64,000 nucleotides of DNA from Blastocladiella emersonii ATCC 22665 (lineage: Eukaryota > Fungi > Blastocladiomycota). How positions within the stretch are numbered: position 1 is the stretch's first letter; every line of letters starts with the position of its first letter. The notes under the pieces are model-generated. The model was not told the origin of the DNA and did no database searches. It worked only from the letters and a program-made list of their open reading frames with translations. A program made the translations under genes and the position numbers. The DNA lies in NCBI GenBank assembly GCA_025594325.1, contig JANHCV010000009.1, positions 806,001 through 870,000 of the forward strand. Reading direction: 5' to 3'. This document shows, one piece after another, positions 32,025 to 39,535 of this stretch.

Positions 32025-35000
32025 TCACGCCTCGTTATCCGCGGGCGCCGCCGGCCCGAGGACCAGGCCCGCCGGGCCGTCGTCGTCGACGCGCAGGAGG
32101 TCGCGCTCGAGGTCGCGCTCGATGTCCATGTCGTCCTGGTCAATGGCCGCCGCCGCTGCCGGCGTCGAGTCCTTGACGACGACTATCATGTCGTTGTCGG
32201 GGAGCGACGGACCGAGGACGGGCGACCCGCCGATCCCGAGGTCGCGGGCGAGCTTGCTCTTCTCGGACAGCGACTCGATGGTGTTGAACCCGACCGTCGT
32301 CGTCGTCGTCGTAGTCGGGGCCGCGGTACTGATGAGCGAGGACCCGGCGCCGCTGAACGGGACGAGGGCGCCCGCCGACGACGACGCGCGGCTGGCACTG
32401 CCGAACCCGGACGACGAGCCGCCCGAGAGCCACGACGCGCGCTTGTTAGCGGAGCTGCCCCACCCGTCCTCGGGGTCCTGCTCCGTGAGGTCGCGGATCT
32501 TGGCCTCGTCGGTGACGGGGGCGACAGGTTCGGGGATCGCGCAGTGGACGCCGCCGCGGCGGCGGTAGAAGAGGACGTACGACGCGCGCGTGATGACGTC
32601 GTCGGCCGACACGGGCGAGACGCGCGAGTCGTCGAACTCGTACCACTGGTGATCCCCGAGACTATGCGCGTACGCCGTGTAGTGCCCGCCGCCGATCCCG
32701 CCGTAGTGGTTGGTGACCGCGTACAGCTCGTACACGCCGTCGCCCTCGGCGAGCGCGGGGTCGAGCGCGCGCCCGTGCAGGTCGAGGACGCGCGGGCAGT
32801 CGACGAGCACGTCGATCTTCTCGCGCCGGTACCGCCCGCCCTGCCCGAACCGCTTGAGGGCGACCACGAGCACCTGCGGCAGCCGCCACAGGTCCACCTT
32901 CTTGCTCGCCTCGCGGTGCTCCTTGCACTTGCGGCAGTACACGGGGTCCGACGCGCCCAGGTGCTCGTCCGCGACGAAGGCGTCAAGGCACTGGTCGAGC
33001 GTGTACGCGTCGGGCTTGGTCGACGCGCCGAGCTTGGGCGCGTTGATGGCGCCGCCGTCGAGCGTCTTGGACCACAGCGCGGTACCTGTGAACGCCGGCG
33101 CGGCGGGGGCCGCGGACTCGGCGTCGGCCGTCGCGGGCGCTGCGGGCGCGGCGTCGTCGAGCGACGTGGCGGCCCACGGATCCACGCTCGTGTCGGCAGC
33201 CGCCGCGGTCGCGGCCGGGGTCTCGGCCATCTCGACGTCGCCCGACGTCGACGGGCCGAGGTTCTCGCTGCTGTTCCCGAGAAGGACCGCGGTACTCGAC
33301 GCGGCCGAGACGAACCCGAGGCTCGTACTACTACTCGACCCCACCCCCGCAACCGGCCGCGCACCGAACGCCGCCGCCTTCTTCTCCTCGGCGAACGCGA
33401 CCTCGGCAACACTCTCGTCCCAGACAACGTTGATGGACTGGAGCGGCGCGATCGCGGCGCCGGCGACGAGATCCGTAGCCGTAGCGCGGTACGTGCGTCC
33501 GGCGGGCGCGGCCTGGACCTTGACGAACTGGGCGACGTCCGCGTCCGGGTGCGCGGCGCGGTACGCGTCCCACGGGAACGTGGTCCACCGCTTCATGGTG
33601 GCGACGATGGCTGCGTGCGCCTGCGCCGGGTCGAAGGGCGTGCGGAAGAAGGCGAGCGTCGGCTCGCCAAAGTCGGTGGCCGAAGGGCCGCGGCGGTAGG
33701 ACGGGTAGAAGGACGTGGTGGTGGAGGTGCTGGAGGAGGTGGAGGACTCGGCCTCGAAGGCGGCGGCCGCGGCGAACGACAGCTTCGAGTGGCACAGGAA
33801 CACGGGGACGAACTTGGCGGGCTCCTCGGCCTCCTTGGGCGCGGCGGTGGGCGCCGGGGTCTCGGCAGCGTCGGCGGTGGCAGGCGCCGAGTCGACCTGC
33901 ATCGGCGACGCGGACCCGTTCTCGACCTCGGTGACGGGGGCTGGGGTCTCGGCCATGACCTGGTCGGCAGTCTCGCCAGCGGGCTTCTCATCCTCCTCCT
34001 TCTCAACCGCGGGCACAACCGCCGCGATCTCGCCACACATCGGGTACCCAGCGGGCACCTCGCCGTCGGGCGGGAGCTCGAGGACGAGGATGACGTCTCC
34101 TGCGGCGATTTCGGCGACGGGCTCGAGGTCGCGGTAGACGCGGTGGATCTTGTGGTTCCAGACCTCGACGACGGCGGCGCGCGGCGTCGCCTCCCCCTCG
34201 GCGCCCGTCGCAAACACGTGCTTGGCGACCGTGGACGCGAGCTCGCCCATCCCGCCATCGCGCTTGACGTACGCGACGGTGCGTACGGGTAGGCGGTTGG
34301 GGTCGAGCGGGATGGCGATGACGCGGACGGGCGCGAGTGCGGCCTCGCACGGGATCGGCAGCGTGAGGACCATGAAGGGGTCGAAGGTGACAGAGACGCC
34401 GCCGCACGTGGCGCACTGGACGCGCGACTTGTACTGGCCCTGGAACAGGTCGACGATGATCGAGTCGTTGCGCGCGCGGTGGCCGGCCCACTGCTCGGCG
34501 GCGACCTCGGCGTCGGGCCGGCCGTCGTCGTCCTTGGCCTCGATGTACGGCTTGGACCGGACGCGGTTGAGGTCCTCGTGGAGCCCGTCGAGGAGGAACC
34601 CGAGGAGTTCCTGCGAGTCGTGCTGCGCGTACCCCGAGAACTGGGGCGCGAACTGGGCCATGGCGGCCTTGAAGTGGCGCGGCGCGATCGAGCGGTCGGT
34701 CGAGGGGGTCCACATGGCCTTCATGAGGGCCGCGTACGCCTTGGACATGGCGCCCTGGGTGCCGAGCGGGTTGTCCGGGTTCACCTCGTGCACCCACGCG
34801 CCGCGGTTGAAGTAGTCGAGGTTCAGGAACGGCGTGTTGGACATGCACTGCAGCGCCGAGTTCATGAAGCACGTGTTGCCGAGGTTCTGCAGGCCCTTGA
34901 GCCCCGCGGCGACCGTCGGCAGCTGCGCGCGGCGCTCGGCGGCGAGGGCGGCCGCGGCCGACGACGACGAGGACGGGCCCGCCGAGGAGGAGGAGGTATA

Positions 35001-36161
35001 GGACGTGGTGTGGAACATGGACGCGTTGGACGGGCCCGAGTTGAACCGCGACGCCGCGGCAGCTGCAGCCGCCGACGTGTTGGACGCAGCGGACGCGTCG
35101 CCGATGAGCGTGTATCCGGGCGGCGAGGTGGGCGAGGCGGGGAAGAAGGCGGCAGCGGCAGCGGCGGCGGACGCGGACATGGACCCGAGTGTCGGCGCGT
35201 TGCGCGCGTCGGAGAACATGTCGTCGCTATCGTCGCCGTCGTCAAAGTTGGTGTAGAGCGAGCGGCTGGCGAACGTCGGGTTGTTGGAGATAGTCACCGA
35301 CTGGCCGAACGGATCATCCTCATCCTCGTCGTCGTTCAGCGCGGCGGGACACAGCGCGCCGGCGCGCGTGGTGACGTGGCTGAGCGAGTCGTGGCCGCCG
35401 TGCGTCGTCTCGAAGGCGATCGACTGCTTCCACAAGCGCACGCTGTGTGGGTGCGTGGTCGTGGCGGCGTGGAGGACGGCGCGGGCGACGTGGACGGCGC
35501 TGCGCTCGATGCACAGCTCCGCGTCGGCCGACAGCTCGTCCTCGGACAGGCCCGCGTCGCCGACGGCGTGCTGCGCGACGAGCGACGCGACGAGCACGCT
35601 GACAAAGTGGCGCTCGACGAAGACGGCGGTTGCGAGCCAGTCGTCGCGGCCGAGCGCGGTGGCGCCGCGCGTCGTGATGGCGGCGGCGACGAGCGAGGAG
35701 ACGCGGTCGCGGTCGGCGAGCGTCGCGGCGGACCCGGCGGCGCGGTGCGCGACGGACGCGCCGGCGAGCAGCACGAGGTGCGGCATCGGGAGCAGCGGGT
35801 CGGTGGCGACGAGCGACTTGGCGAGCTCGACGGCGTCGTCGGGCGCGTCGAGCAGGGCGAGCACGCGGTCGGTCGCGGCCTTGGTGGCGGGCGCGAGCTG
35901 GGCGATATCGTCGCCGGCGGCCCACAGGATCGAGTGGCCTGCCGCGGCGGCTGAAGACACGAGCAGGTGCATGGCGTCGTCGTCGGCCATTTCGGTGGCC
36001 GCGGACGAGGCAGGCGAGGCGGAGCGCACGGGCGACGCGGCGAGCGAGACGGACCCCTGGTGCGGCGCGTAGTGCGGCGAGCGCATGGCCGGGATCGCGA
36101 CGGCGGGGGTGGCGGGCGACGCGAGCTCGCCCGGCAGGAAGCGGACCTCGGGCGACGACAT
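32025..36161 (-). CDS. Ubiquitin-specific protease (USP4/11/15/Ubp12-like catalytic domain) with a HAT/TPR-like N-terminus
   Basis: Cys box GLQNLGNTCFMNSALQC, QHDSQELL..LLDGLHEDLN, CxxC pairs, LPQVLVVALKRF, His box NHYGGIGGGHYTAYA..WYEFDDS..YVLFYRRR. Single ORF; start MSSPEV at 36161 is assumed. Confidence 0.9.
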   Translation of the reverse strand: MSSPEVRFLPGELASPATPAVAIPAMRSPHYAPHQGSVSLAASPVRSASPASSAATEMADDDAMHLLVSSAAAAGHSILWAAGDDIAQLAPATKAATDRVLALLDAPDDAVELAKSLVATDPLLPMPHLVLLAGASVAHRAAGSAATLADRDRVSSLVAAAITTRGATALGRDDWLATAVFVERHFVSVLVASLVAQHAVGDAGLSEDELSADAELCIERSAVHVARAVLHAATTTHPHSVRLWKQSIAFETTHGGHDSLSHVTTRAGALCPAALNDDEDEDDPFGQSVTISNNPTFASRSLYTNFDDGDDSDDMFSDARNAPTLGSMSASAAAAAAAFFPASPTSPPGYTLIGDASAASNTSAAAAAAASRFNSGPSNASMFHTTSYTSSSSAGPSSSSSAAAALAAERRAQLPTVAAGLKGLQNLGNTCFMNSALQCMSNTPFLNLDYFNRGAWVHEVNPDNPLGTQGAMSKAYAALMKAMWTPSTDRSIAPRHFKAAMAQFAPQFSGYAQHDSQELLGFLLDGLHEDLNRVRSKPYIEAKDDDGRPDAEVAAEQWAGHRARNDSIIVDLFQGQYKSRVQCATCGGVSVTFDPFMVLTLPIPCEAALAPVRVIAIPLDPNRLPVRTVAYVKRDGGMGELASTVAKHVFATGAEGEATPRAAVVEVWNHKIHRVYRDLEPVAEIAAGDVILVLELPPDGEVPAGYPMCGEIAAVVPAVEKEEDEKPAGETADQVMAETPAPVTEVENGSASPMQVDSAPATADAAETPAPTAAPKEAEEPAKFVPVFLCHSKLSFAAAAAFEAESSTSSSTSTTTSFYPSYRRGPSATDFGEPTLAFFRTPFDPAQAHAAIVATMKRWTTFPWDAYRAAHPDADVAQFVKVQAAPAGRTYRATATDLVAGAAIAPLQSINVVWDESVAEVAFAEEKKAAAFGARPVAGVGSSSSTSLGFVSAASSTAVLLGNSSENLGPSTSGDVEMAETPAATAAAADTSVDPWAATSLDDAAPAAPATADAESAAPAAPAFTGTALWSKTLDGGAINAPKLGASTKPDAYTLDQCLDAFVADEHLGASDPVYCRKCKEHREASKKVDLWRLPQVLVVALKRFGQGGRYRREKIDVLVDCPRVLDLHGRALDPALAEGDGVYELYAVTNHYGGIGGGHYTAYAHSLGDHQWYEFDDSRVSPVSADDVITRASYVLFYRRRGGVHCAIPEPVAPVTDEAKIRDLTEQDPEDGWGSSANKRASWLSGGSSSGFGSASRASSSAGALVPFSGAGSSLISTAAPTTTTTTTVGFNTIESLSEKSKLARDLGIGGSPVLGPSLPDNDMIVVVKDSTPAAAAAIDQDDMDIERDLERDLLRVDDDGPAGLVLGPAAPADNEA

Positions 36162-36952
36162 GGCCGTGGGCGGCGAGGGCGCGGGGCGCGCGGGCGAGTG
36201 CGGGGGCGAGGGACCGTCCATGTGCGTGTGCGTCCGCTTCATGCGTGTCTGTGACCGGGTGTGAGCGATCACCAAGGGGGTGCCGGGCAGGCCAGGCGTA
36301 CCACAGCGGGCGCGGGCGGGGGAGCGCGGGGCCGGGCGGTGGACGCAGCGGGCGGGGGCGCGGTGCAGCAAGTCGCGGGCCGCCGATCTCGTCGTGGGCG
36401 GGCGGGCGTCGGCGCGGAGGGGCGGCGCGGTCGGCAGCGGCGGTGGCTGGGCGGGCGGACCGGAGAACGCGCTGGCAACGACTCGGCGCGCGTCGGGTGA
36501 CTTCACGCGACGGGCCCATGACCGCGATAACAGGTTTTCCGGGGACCGCTCGCCGGACTCTGCGCCGCGGCGACCGCCGCCTTTGGCCGGCGCGGAGGGG
36601 AGATGTGATCCACCTCGACCTTCGCGTACGTGGCGCCGCCCTGCACTCGCTCCCACTCCCCGCAACGGCATGGGCGCCCCGCCGCCGCCCTAAAGAACCG
36701 CGGATCGCGCTGGATGGATGGATCTCATGGACTCGCGCTGCGCTCGCCGTACCATGCCTGGGCGCCACACGCCGACTCGGCCGCTACTCGGCTCGGTGAT
36801 CGCTGAATGACGCGCGACCCATCTTGGTGGGGTCCATCCGTCCAGCCGACCCACACCCGCCCGCGTGCCGCCACCCTCCGCCAAAGAACCCCTGTGCGAT
36901 CCGCATCTCACCCTCCCTCCCTCCCCCCTCCGCGCAGGTCATCCACTCCATC

Positions 36953-38200
36953 ATGTCCAAGAAGCTCAAGGGAACCAAGCTCAGCGCCGCCGAGTTCCTC
37001 TCGTCCGAGAACTCGTGGGCCGACGACGAGCACGACCTCCCCTCGTCGCTGCCCGGCGCGCCCATCGCGCTCCCGTCCGCGCCCGGCGCTCTCGCCGCCG
37101 AGGGCGGTCCCGCGCGCCCGCAGAAGCCCCTTCCCACGGGCCCGCCCTACACGGCGTTCGTCGGCAACCTGTCGTACGAGGTGGACGACGACACGCTCGG
37201 CTCCTTCTTCTACGAGGTCGGCCAGTGCGAGATCGTCCAGCCGCGCGTCGTGCGCGACCGCGAGTCGGGCCAGCCCAAGGGGTTCGGGTACATTGAGTTT
37301 GCCGACATCGAGTCGCTCAAGCGCGCCCTCGCTCTCGACGGCTTCGAGGTCATTGACCGCCAGATCCGCGTCGACGTCGCCGACACCACCCAGTCCGCGT
37401 CCGGCGCCTCGCGCAACCGGTCCGGCTTCGGCGGGTTCTCGGGCGGCGCGGAGATGCGCGAGGAGCGCGCTGCGGGCGCCATCAACTGGCGCCGCGAGGC
37501 CCCCGTCGATTTCGTCCCTGCCCAGCAGTCGGGCTTCGGCGGCCCGCGCCGCGGCGGGTTCGGCGACCGCGCTGAGCGCCCCGCCGGCGGGTTCGGCTCC
37601 GACCGCCCGCCCCGCGAGGACCGCCCCAACCCCTTCGACAATTTCTCGCGCCCCGCCCCCGCTGCCCCCGTCGAGCGCAAGAAGCTTGACCTCGCCCCGC
37701 GCACCAAGCCCGTCGAGGCCCCCAAGCCCGTCGCCGCTCCCGCCCCCGCCGCCGCTGCTGAGCCCGCCGCTGCCGCCGCCCCGGCCCCCGAGCAGCCCGC
37801 CAAGAAGAAGTTCAACCCGTTCGGCGCCGCCAAGCCCGTCGACACCCAGTCCAAGCTGCTCGACGTCGAGAAGAAGCTGGCCCAGACCAAGATCGCCGAG
37901 CCCGCCGCCGCCGCCGGTTCGGAGGAGAAGCCCGCGTCCCCCGCCGGCTCCGCGTCCAGCCCGACCGACCGCACCCGCTCGCCCGGCCCGCGCGGCGCCC
38001 CTGGTGCTCGTGGCGCCCGCGACTCGGCGACCCGCGGCCGCGGCGGCGCCCATGGCCTGCCCGAGCGCAAGGCCACCTACGGCTGGGGCAAGTCGGCCCG
38101 CGAGATGAAGGCCGCGAAGGAGGACGAGCAGCCGCGCGCCAAGTCGCCCGCGCCCCGCGCCAAGTCCGGCACCCGTGCCAAGTCGCCCAAGCCCGAGTAA
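36953..38200 (+). CDS. TIF3: Translation initiation factor eIF4B-like RRM protein
   Basis: SWADDE motif, PPYTAFVGNLSY, RESGQPKGFGYIEF, RQIRVDVA, followed by RGG/DRP-rich repeats and KFNPFGAAKPVDT. Confidence 0.85.
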   Translation: MSKKLKGTKLSAAEFLSSENSWADDEHDLPSSLPGAPIALPSAPGALAAEGGPARPQKPLPTGPPYTAFVGNLSYEVDDDTLGSFFYEVGQCEIVQPRVVRDRESGQPKGFGYIEFADIESLKRALALDGFEVIDRQIRVDVADTTQSASGASRNRSGFGGFSGGAEMREERAAGAINWRREAPVDFVPAQQSGFGGPRRGGFGDRAERPAGGFGSDRPPREDRPNPFDNFSRPAPAAPVERKKLDLAPRTKPVEAPKPVAAPAPAAAAEPAAAAAPAPEQPAKKKFNPFGAAKPVDTQSKLLDVEKKLAQTKIAEPAAAAGSEEKPASPAGSASSPTDRTRSPGPRGAPGARGARDSATRGRGGAHGLPERKATYGWGKSAREMKAAKEDEQPRAKSPAPRAKSGTRAKSPKPE

Positions 38201-38376: not shown

Positions 38377-39535
38377 TCAGCGGATGTTGGACAGTTCCAG
38401 CTTCTCAAAGTGGCGCCGCGCGCTCGCGATGTTGGCCAGGGCCGCGCGGGATTCTACACTCGCTCGCTCGCGTCAGTCGCGCGTCCCCACCCTCTCGCAC
38501 ACCCGCAAAACGTACGAATGGTCGGATCGGACACGATCATCATCATGTACGTGTTGGCCGTGAGCGTGTCGAGGTACACCGAGAACGCGGCGTGGCGGAC
38601 CTCCATGGCCGAGAACTGGGCCTGGGCCTTGACACACGACAGCTTGAACTGCTTGATGATGTTGCTGATTTTCTCGAACCGGTGCGAGTCGAGGACCGAG
38701 GGCCCGAACCGCGACACGTGCGAGATGACGAGAAAAGTGGCCTTCTCGAACAGGATGATCTCGTCGGCGTCGGTCGCGGCACAGAACTTGTCGAGGTTGG
38801 CCTCGAGCAGCTTCACGTTCGGGATCAGCGCGTACACGATCGACGACCACGCCTGGTACAGGGTCTCGTCCCAGATCGACGTCTGGAAGCACAGCGGCTG
38901 CAGCGGGTGCGAGCGAGACATGATCTGGTTCACGCGGTCCTCGAAGATCTAACAAGGGGGGTGCTTCGTGTCAGCGGGAGTCGCGAAACGGCGAAACGAG
39001 AACGTACGCGGTCGCGCATGTCCTCCTGGACCAAGTCCATCTTGTGGACGAGGCAGAACACCTTGGCGTCCTTGGAGTTCTGCTTGATGGCGTCGATGCA
39101 CGACTGAAAGTAGTCGAAGTCGCGCTCCAGCTCGCGCGACTCGACGTCGAAAATGTAGATGAGCACCTCGACGTTGCGGAAAATGTGGTCGCGCTGCGAC
39201 GTGAAGTAGTTTTCCATGAACGAGTCCTGCCTACACACGTGCGCAGTGGTTCAGCGCGCTGGCGACGTGGTGGTAAGAGTGTGCGTAGCGCCGTACCCTC
39301 CGCAGTCCCACAGGTTGAGCACCAGGTTGCCGAGGAACCGCACGCTCGCGTGCTCGACCTCGACTACACATCACCATAGCGTAAGCCTTCGCGCCACCCA
39401 ACTCATCCCCCCAAAAGGCGTACTCGTGGCGCCCAACCGGCGCGTGTCACGGGCAATGTAGTTGGCAAAGATGATGGAGCGCATCGACGTCTTGCCGCTC
39501 CCGCTCTTGCCCATCAGGAGGACCTTTTTCTTCAT
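38377..39535 (-). CDS. GTR1: Rag GTPase Gtr1/RagA-B (4 introns)
   Basis: [70 protein letters not shown]; GT-AG introns restore the frame. Confidence 0.95.

Follow-up and report, generated by a model that had tools for sequence, protein, structure and literature searches.

A Ubp12/USP4/USP15-Type Deubiquitinase of Blastocladiella emersonii in Which a PRP6-Derived HAT-Repeat Module Appears to Replace DUSP-UBL

Introduction

Deubiquitinases of the USP4/USP15 type are defined by a DUSP-UBL targeting module, and the animal enzymes regulate the stability of the U4/U6.U5 tri-snRNP via SART3. USP4 and USP15 reach PRP3 and PRP31 through the HAT repeats of SART3, which are bound by the DUSP-UBL of the enzyme (PMC4914101, PMC5416801). 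Within the tri-snRNP itself, U4/U6 and U5 are bridged by the TPR/HAT domain of PRP6 (PMC11102862), which makes contacts with PRP31, PRP4K, SNU66, CypH, and others (PMC11102862, PMC11208138, PMC6274647). The contact with Brr2 is made by PRP6 residues 272–373 (PMC6274647), outside the piece that concerns us here. In the structural literature on the tri-snRNP we did not find a residue-level partner of PRP6 410–607, and a literature search did not turn up a description of an architecture in which a PRP6 module is combined with a USP.

Here, we analyze a stretch of 64,000 nucleotides from Blastocladiella emersonii ATCC 22665 (assembly GCA_025594325.1, whose accession prefix links it to the genome paper PMC9730499; contig JANHCV010000009.1, positions 806,001 to 870,000; "the window"), which encodes a protein that we call HAT-USP. 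B. emersonii is a water mould-like fungus. In common with USP4, USP11, and USP15 of animals and Ubp12 of fungi, HAT-USP has the catalytic domain with its large insert, the Cys, His, and Asp motifs, and the zinc-ribbon cysteines; unlike these enzymes, it has no detectable DUSP or UBL and carries a PRP6-derived HAT module instead. With PRP6/Prp1 (U5 snRNP 102K) it shares one stretch of the HAT array (human residues ∼481–607), including near-invariant residues and the fold, but the fragment is fused to an enzyme, comes without PRP1_N and without the other HAT repeats, and sits on long branches. A further known parallel is the SART3/Prp24–USP4/USP15 system, in which a HAT-repeat domain is likewise paired with an enzyme of the USP4/15 type and which in animals acts on the tri-snRNP. 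In that system, however, the HAT domain belongs to SART3, a separate adaptor to which the enzyme binds through its DUSP-UBL, whereas here the HAT piece lies in cis, comes from PRP6 and not from SART3, and the SART3-binding DUSP-UBL is gone.

Results

One Reading Frame Spans the Module, the Linker, and the Catalytic Domain

On the minus strand, the list of open reading frames contains a single stop-free ORF at 32025..36671 that holds both the PRP6-like segment and the USP domain. The annotated product begins with the Met codon at 36242, has no intron, and matches the translated ORF residue for residue. The original prediction had been that one such frame joins a helical N-terminal segment to a USP4/11/15-type domain, and the ORF, the AF2 models, and the PDB matches described below all agree with it. 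The locus is laid out as follows.

32025..36242, minus strand: complete HAT-USP (P0001) coding sequence, one exon that encodes 1405 aa, with the stop codon at 32025-32027
35901..36242, minus strand: N-terminal Ala/Pro/Ser-rich tail, aa 1-114, assigned from composition and predicted to be disordered (AF2 pLDDT 33-52, no strands)
35337..35900, minus strand: PRP6-derived HAT-repeat module, aa 115-302, assigned from phmmer, alignment, AF2, and Foldseek, with the strongest PRP6 homology at 35340-35708
34905..35336, minus strand: linker, aa 303-446, acidic and then Ala/Ser-rich, low-complexity, assigned from composition (AF2 pLDDT 35-54, no beta strands)
32523..34904, minus strand: catalytic domain of the USP4/11/15/Ubp12 type, interrupted by a large insert, assigned from Pfam, PDB matches, motifs, and tree
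32028..32522, minus strand: low-complexity C-terminal tail, aa 1241-1405, assigned from composition
36953..38200, plus strand: gene for an RRM protein, divergent from the USP gene, taken from the called genes and used as a synteny marker together with a GTPase gene beyond it

The DNA of the window is ∼70% G+C, and several ORFs of >400 aa overlap the HAT-USP ORF in other frames, so an open frame alone is little evidence of coding. Coding was instead checked from the base composition of codon positions (GC3 and GC2) along the frame of the ORF. In this frame, GC3 stays at 0.82–1.00 from ∼36200 to the stop codon, and the pattern fades upstream of ∼36350. The PRP6-like segment, read in its own frame, has a GC3 of 0.96–1.00 and a GC2 of 0.46–0.62, a low GC2 being found in the catalytic domain as well, and the in-frame GC3 of the linker is 0.88–0.98. 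Because the in-frame GC3 signal is continuous, at 0.88–1.00 from the module to the USP domain, the module, the linker, and the catalytic domain lie in one coding frame under one codon-bias regime; this pattern suggests that the three are likely made as a single polypeptide.

A 694-nt contig from an independent short-read assembly spans 34960–35653 with zero differences from the window, and these DNA contigs lend modest support to the continuity of the assembly. The sequencing runs listed for the source sample were three in number, all of DNA. The remaining short-read contig matches, mostly 20–28 nt long and of low complexity, were taken as spurious together with the "joints" that they produced.

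The Catalytic Domain Is of the Ubp12/USP4/USP15 Type

Pfam recognizes UCH in HAT-USP with an E value of 3.9e-67, and the 254 matched profile positions are spread over 777 residues owing to the large insert, in which Pfam finds only a weak match to USP7_C2 (E 0.23). The nearest solved structures in the PDB are those of USP15, USP4, and USP11, with E values of 1e-117 to 3e-102. The catalytic and zinc-ribbon motifs are all present.

34857-34895, minus strand: Cys box, intact
34404-34415 and 32925-32936, minus strand: CxxC pairs, both intact, which supply the zinc-ribbon cysteines
32673-32690, minus strand: His box, intact
32628-32642, minus strand: Asp box, intact

Among the best 120 USP matches, the nearest database relatives are fungal Ubp12 and animal USP4/15, and almost all of them contain a DUSP domain (PF06337). 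The fungal Ubp12 relatives bear names that associate them with the COP9 signalosome (CSN) and not with the spliceosome. In a maximum-likelihood tree, HAT-USP falls inside the fungal Ubp12 clade with a support of 100/99, on a long branch of 2.09 whose placement within the clade is not settled; a clade that unites the B. emersonii protein with its counterpart from Sorochytrium, described below, is not rejected (p-AU 0.39). No second protein from B. emersonii or Sorochytrium is present among these 120 matches, which hints, without amounting to proof, that HAT-USP may be the only Ubp12-type gene of its genome.

DUSP and UBL Are Not Detected Ahead of the Catalytic Domain

The absence of a DUSP domain had been predicted from the reading of the letters, and it holds: Pfam does not find DUSP in HAT-USP even at E ≤ 10, while as a control a scan of the same kind finds it at E 2.5e-17 in a relative from Paraphysoderma. 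An AF2 model of aa 1–460 contains one folded domain, at ∼aa 120–305, with no beta strands and with flanks at pLDDT 33–54. A cryptic DUSP, the outcome that would have counted against the original prediction, is ruled out by the Pfam scan together with this model, which contains no alpha/beta domain. Neither Pfam nor the model of aa 1–460 reveals a UBL ahead of the catalytic domain, the flanks in that model being covered by almost no aligned sequences. We note that DUSP is likewise missing from several further Ubp12-type proteins of fungi, whose N-termini are short and have no replacement domain. The N-terminus of the Ubp12 family thus appears, from these sequences, to be evolutionarily plastic, with recurrent loss of DUSP in fungi.

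The N-Terminal Module Matches One Segment of PRP6

When the 320 aa encoded by 36161 → 35200 are searched with phmmer, PRP6 is the sole match in the PDB. The match to human PRP6 covers residues 481–607 (E 4.6e-12) and corresponds to 35340–35708 of the window. This stretch of PRP6 scores 31.7 bits, and the remaining HAT repeats of PRP6 score 0.3–6 bits. An exhaustive phmmer search of 1.84 billion representatives returned 47 matches. Two of these are HAT-USP and a protein of 356 aa (P0002), and nearly all of the other 45 fall at the homologous position of PRP6, which is ∼430–600 in the full-length (∼900-aa) ones. The names of ten matches were looked up: four are PRP6/PRP1, one is a fungal (Piptocephalis) protein without a name, and five are nameless. 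A chance similarity of the generic TPR/HAT kind was considered and is ruled out by the concentration of the matches at one position of PRP6. Some of the matches reach back to query residue ∼100, or ∼35870 in the window, so that the interval originally proposed, 35340–35870, is a good fit; the expectation that a PDB search would return PRP6 was likewise borne out. Taken together, the searches support derivation of the segment from PRP6 specifically, as opposed to HAT proteins in general.

An alignment of the module with 26 segments of PRP6 leads in the same direction. The module retains near-invariant PRP6 residues (the retention at conserved versus variable PRP6 columns is no clean test of selection), and the motif spacing of the PRP6/Prp1 HAT repeats given in the original prediction agrees with the alignment. 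The homology to PRP6 ends exactly at the "CP" motif, where the acidic linker starts. The identity between the module and PRP6 proteins is 19–27%, as compared with 41% among PRP6 proteins themselves, and some strictly conserved PRP6 residues have been lost. In size, the module amounts to ∼190 of the ∼940 residues of PRP6, about a fifth, and has none of the other HAT repeats. No Pfam match to PRP1_N (PF06424) is found in the HAT-USP protein. Pfam TPR_14 scores 18.6 bits on the module, below its cutoff of 23.5; the helical-hairpin fold and the HAT motif are present in the AF2 model and the alignment. A search of NCBIfam, which is oriented toward prokaryotes, gave no match.

AF2 predicts the module to be all-helical, with 12–13 helices, a pLDDT of 84.8, and a pTM of 0.78; by position, the pLDDT is 69 in the block 121–130 and then 83–97 from about residue 130. 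A Foldseek search of the PDB with this model returns PRP6 chains of human spliceosome structures as the top eight matches, at a TMq of 0.50–0.62 as against ≤0.35 for other TPR proteins, a PRP6-likeness that is partly built in because the AF2 input alignment consists mostly of PRP6 segments.

We infer that a separate full-length PRP6 is encoded elsewhere in the B. emersonii genome because that genome has 19,375 annotated introns (PMC9730499).

The Fusion Recurs at a Syntenic Locus in Sorochytrium

A 1097-aa protein of Sorochytrium milnesiophthora (P0068) has the same architecture, with the module at aa 1–205 followed by UCH and without DUSP. Its module matches that of B. emersonii at E 5e-11 and human PRP6 at E 1e-19 across all 205 residues, reaching back to ∼410. 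Against PRP6 representatives it scores up to 72 bits, and the HAT protein that comes next trails PRP6 by 9 orders of magnitude. The Sorochytrium locus reads GTPase(+)-RRM(-)-USP(+), with a GTPase of the Gtr1/RagA type, in the same order and orientation as in the B. emersonii window, and tblastn between the two loci shows the neighbors to be 37–81% identical at the protein level. From the shared gene order and the similar neighbors, the two HAT-USP genes are positional orthologues. The Sorochytrium module and USP lie in different predicted exons, and their join rests on predicted introns; in B. emersonii, by contrast, both are in one uninterrupted frame.

The nearest relative of the B. emersonii module is the 356-aa protein P0002 (E 2e-15), whose organism (GCA_002102555.1/MCFL01) we take to be Catenaria anguillulae; the B. 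emersonii genome paper cites an assembly of C. anguillulae by the BioProject number PRJNA330705 only (PMC9730499). In Catenaria, the module is encoded by a spliced, stand-alone gene that ends in a stop codon, and it has a similar tail, acidic and Ser-rich. No USP is found within 8 kb of this gene, so the module can occur separately from the enzyme. A direct search with the Catenaria module against PRP6 gives no match. In a tree of modules, all three lie on the same side of a branch supported at 85/76; their neighbors are fungal PRP6 sequences, their branches are long, and those of B. emersonii and Catenaria are sisters (99/94). The alignment places the boundaries of the PRP6 segment at the same points in all three genera.

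Paraphysoderma sedebokerense, another blastoclad, has a canonical DUSP-(UBL)-USP, which is the ancestral form. The Paraphysoderma DUSP-USP locus and the window have no neighbors in common and are non-syntenic. Among the other relatives examined, a PRP6-type N-terminus on a USP was seen only in Sorochytrium, and word-based searches for further fusions with the N-termini of P0001 and P0068 gave the query itself and one PRP6. As to the suggestion that zoosporic fungi be examined for the same fusion, it is present in Sorochytrium, the module is separate in Catenaria, and Paraphysoderma retains DUSP. Because the same fusion is found at a syntenic locus in a second genus, the swap is real; on sequence grounds, it is a lineage-specific domain exchange conserved within Blastocladiomycota and not a product of chance or of annotation. 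The notion of a captured PRP6-derived module, also part of the original prediction, draws its support from this recurrence and from the homology to PRP6.

Discussion

The explanation that we favor, with reasonable though far from complete confidence, is that a fragment of PRP6 was exchanged for the DUSP-UBL in an orthologue of Ubp12/USP4/USP15 and now works as a new targeting domain. Its parts differ in strength. The architecture itself, a HAT module replacing DUSP-UBL, is very probably correct. An internal piece of PRP6, made up of some five or six helical hairpins and corresponding roughly to human residues 410/480–607, would have been duplicated and would have become the only folded N-terminal domain at the place where the relatives have DUSP-UBL. 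The polypeptide would then run from a disordered tail through the HAT module and a flexible linker to a USP domain with intact catalytic motifs. The simplest history would be that the Ubp12 gene captured the fragment once, in an ancestor shared by Sorochytrium, Catenaria, and Blastocladiella, after which DUSP-UBL would have been replaced, the module would have evolved fast, and the module and the USP would later have separated (or the module been duplicated) in Catenaria.

Because DUSP-UBL is the adaptor-binding, targeting part of USP4/15, the module that has taken its place may well be a targeting domain that acts through a protein–protein interaction. What it would target is much more tentative. 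The best single candidate, though less likely than not, is a ligand that the central HAT repeats of PRP6 naturally bind in the U4/U6.U5 tri-snRNP, and docking there would carry the enzyme to tri-snRNP proteins that are ubiquitinated, with no need of an adaptor such as SART3. That the module specifically docks at the tri-snRNP site of the central PRP6 HAT repeats, or competes with PRP6 for it, is slightly more doubtful still.

That the scaffold was kept and the partner changed has about the same likelihood as docking at the tri-snRNP. Here the module would be translated and would keep its HAT scaffold but would bind a nonspliceosomal partner or itself; the COP9 signalosome, another client of Ubp12, or dimerization are examples, and the PRP6 ancestry would then be silent on function. 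In the modules of B. emersonii and Catenaria, the long branches and the several PRP6-invariant residues that have been lost fit such a change, as do the divergence of the Catenaria copy beyond recognition as PRP6 by direct search, the CSN-associated names of the Ubp12 relatives in fungi, and the plasticity of an N-terminus from which DUSP has repeatedly been lost without replacement. Against it, the resemblance to PRP6 remains strong in the Sorochytrium module (E 1e-19), the boundaries of the PRP6 segment are unchanged in three genera, and a role at the tri-snRNP is documented for the parent subfamily in animals (PMC4914101, PMC5416801). The fast divergence of the module fits both possibilities, a new partner no less than the old one.

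It is improbable that the module is a decaying relic, that is, a partial duplicate of PRP6 in the 5′ region that either is left untranslated, with translation starting farther downstream from a Met within the linker, or persists as an inert appendage. Long stop-free frames are common at 70% GC, those of >400 aa overlapping in other frames being a case in point, and a relic would diverge fast, as this module has. Yet the composition of its frame is that of coding sequence, with GC3 at 0.96–1.00 and GC2 as low as in the catalytic domain, structural HAT residues are kept in three genera, the AF2 fold is confidently predicted, the architecture is conserved at the syntenic Sorochytrium locus, and the stand-alone Catenaria gene is intact and spliced. 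Least probable of all is an artefact in which two neighboring genes were annotated as one or were joined by mis-assembly, for even though the Catenaria module gene ends in a stop codon with no USP within 8 kb and the Sorochytrium gene model needs predicted introns, B. emersonii has no in-frame stop between module and USP and a coding bias that is continuous over the linker, an independent short-read contig covers 34960–35653 without a difference, and the same order and strand recur at the syntenic locus.

If we return to the exchange of a PRP6 fragment for DUSP-UBL as the preferred explanation, what it adds to the picture of USP4/USP15-type enzymes is a lineage of fungi in which this replacement has lasted long enough to be found in at least two genera. 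Should the fragment still bind the neighbors of PRP6, it would offer a simple way to test how reversible ubiquitination is directed to the spliceosome, and it would speak for an ancient origin of the connection between the two. If docking at the tri-snRNP is true, HAT-USP would be the first deubiquitinase of the spliceosome that needs no adaptor and has its targeting domain in cis. The gene would then be a Rosetta-stone fusion, the link between USP4/15 and the tri-snRNP would be older than animals, and the stand-alone module of Catenaria would be a split version that acts in trans. Should the fragment not bind the neighbors of PRP6, the protein would still be a clean case of a piece of a core splicing factor reused as the targeting domain of an enzyme. 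In either case, the module displays both fusion and fission, being fused to the USP in Blastocladiella and Sorochytrium and separate from it in Catenaria.

Genomic Context of the Module-USP Fusion

The USP gene that carries the PRP6-derived module has two neighbors on one side in the window:

36953-38200 (+), RRM-protein gene, divergent from the USP gene
about 38377-39242 (-), Gtr1/RagA-type small GTPase gene, beyond the RRM-protein gene

Both genes are found in the same order and orientation at L003, the Sorochytrium milnesiophthora locus with the module-USP fusion, and the GTPase/RRM/USP arrangement is microsynteny between blastoclad genera. The downstream neighbors are not common to the two, being an aldehyde dehydrogenase in the B. 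emersonii window and a cation ATPase in Sorochytrium. The module also occurs by itself:

L002:8001-9213 (contig MCFL01000040.1, which we take to be Catenaria anguillulae), stand-alone spliced gene for the PRP6-derived module, 356 aa

The product has an acidic, Ser-rich tail. The gene encodes no USP. Its location among BTB- and ankyrin-domain genes suggests either that the fused gene was split or that a copy of it was moved here.

Loss of the DUSP domain (or truncation of gene models) is repeated in early-diverging fungi. A Pfam DUSP domain was not found in eight Ubp12-type relatives from Mucorales and Coemansia (P0054, P0058, P0065, P0069, P0079, P0102, P0127, and P0155), whose N-termini ahead of the catalytic domain are only 27-187 residues long and hold no replacement domain.

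At 2.09 changes per column, the branch leading to the B. emersonii protein as a whole is very long, and the protein's composition is deviant. An insert of about 490 aa, mostly low-complexity Ala/Pro/Glu/Ser, separates two CxxC pairs within its catalytic domain:

32523-34904 (-), USP catalytic domain with internal insert

Three ORFs overlap the USP gene:

35320-36768 (-), in another frame
34479-35954 (+), on the opposite strand
32544-34292 (+), on the opposite strand

Their 480-580 aa translations are Arg/Gly/Pro-rich, and they resemble by-products of 70% G+C rather than genes. DNA contigs compared with window 34890-36800 gave many matches of 20-28 nt and, from unrelated long contigs, apparent "joints" at 34912-35652. 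Both are most likely GC-rich low-complexity cross-matches rather than structural variants.
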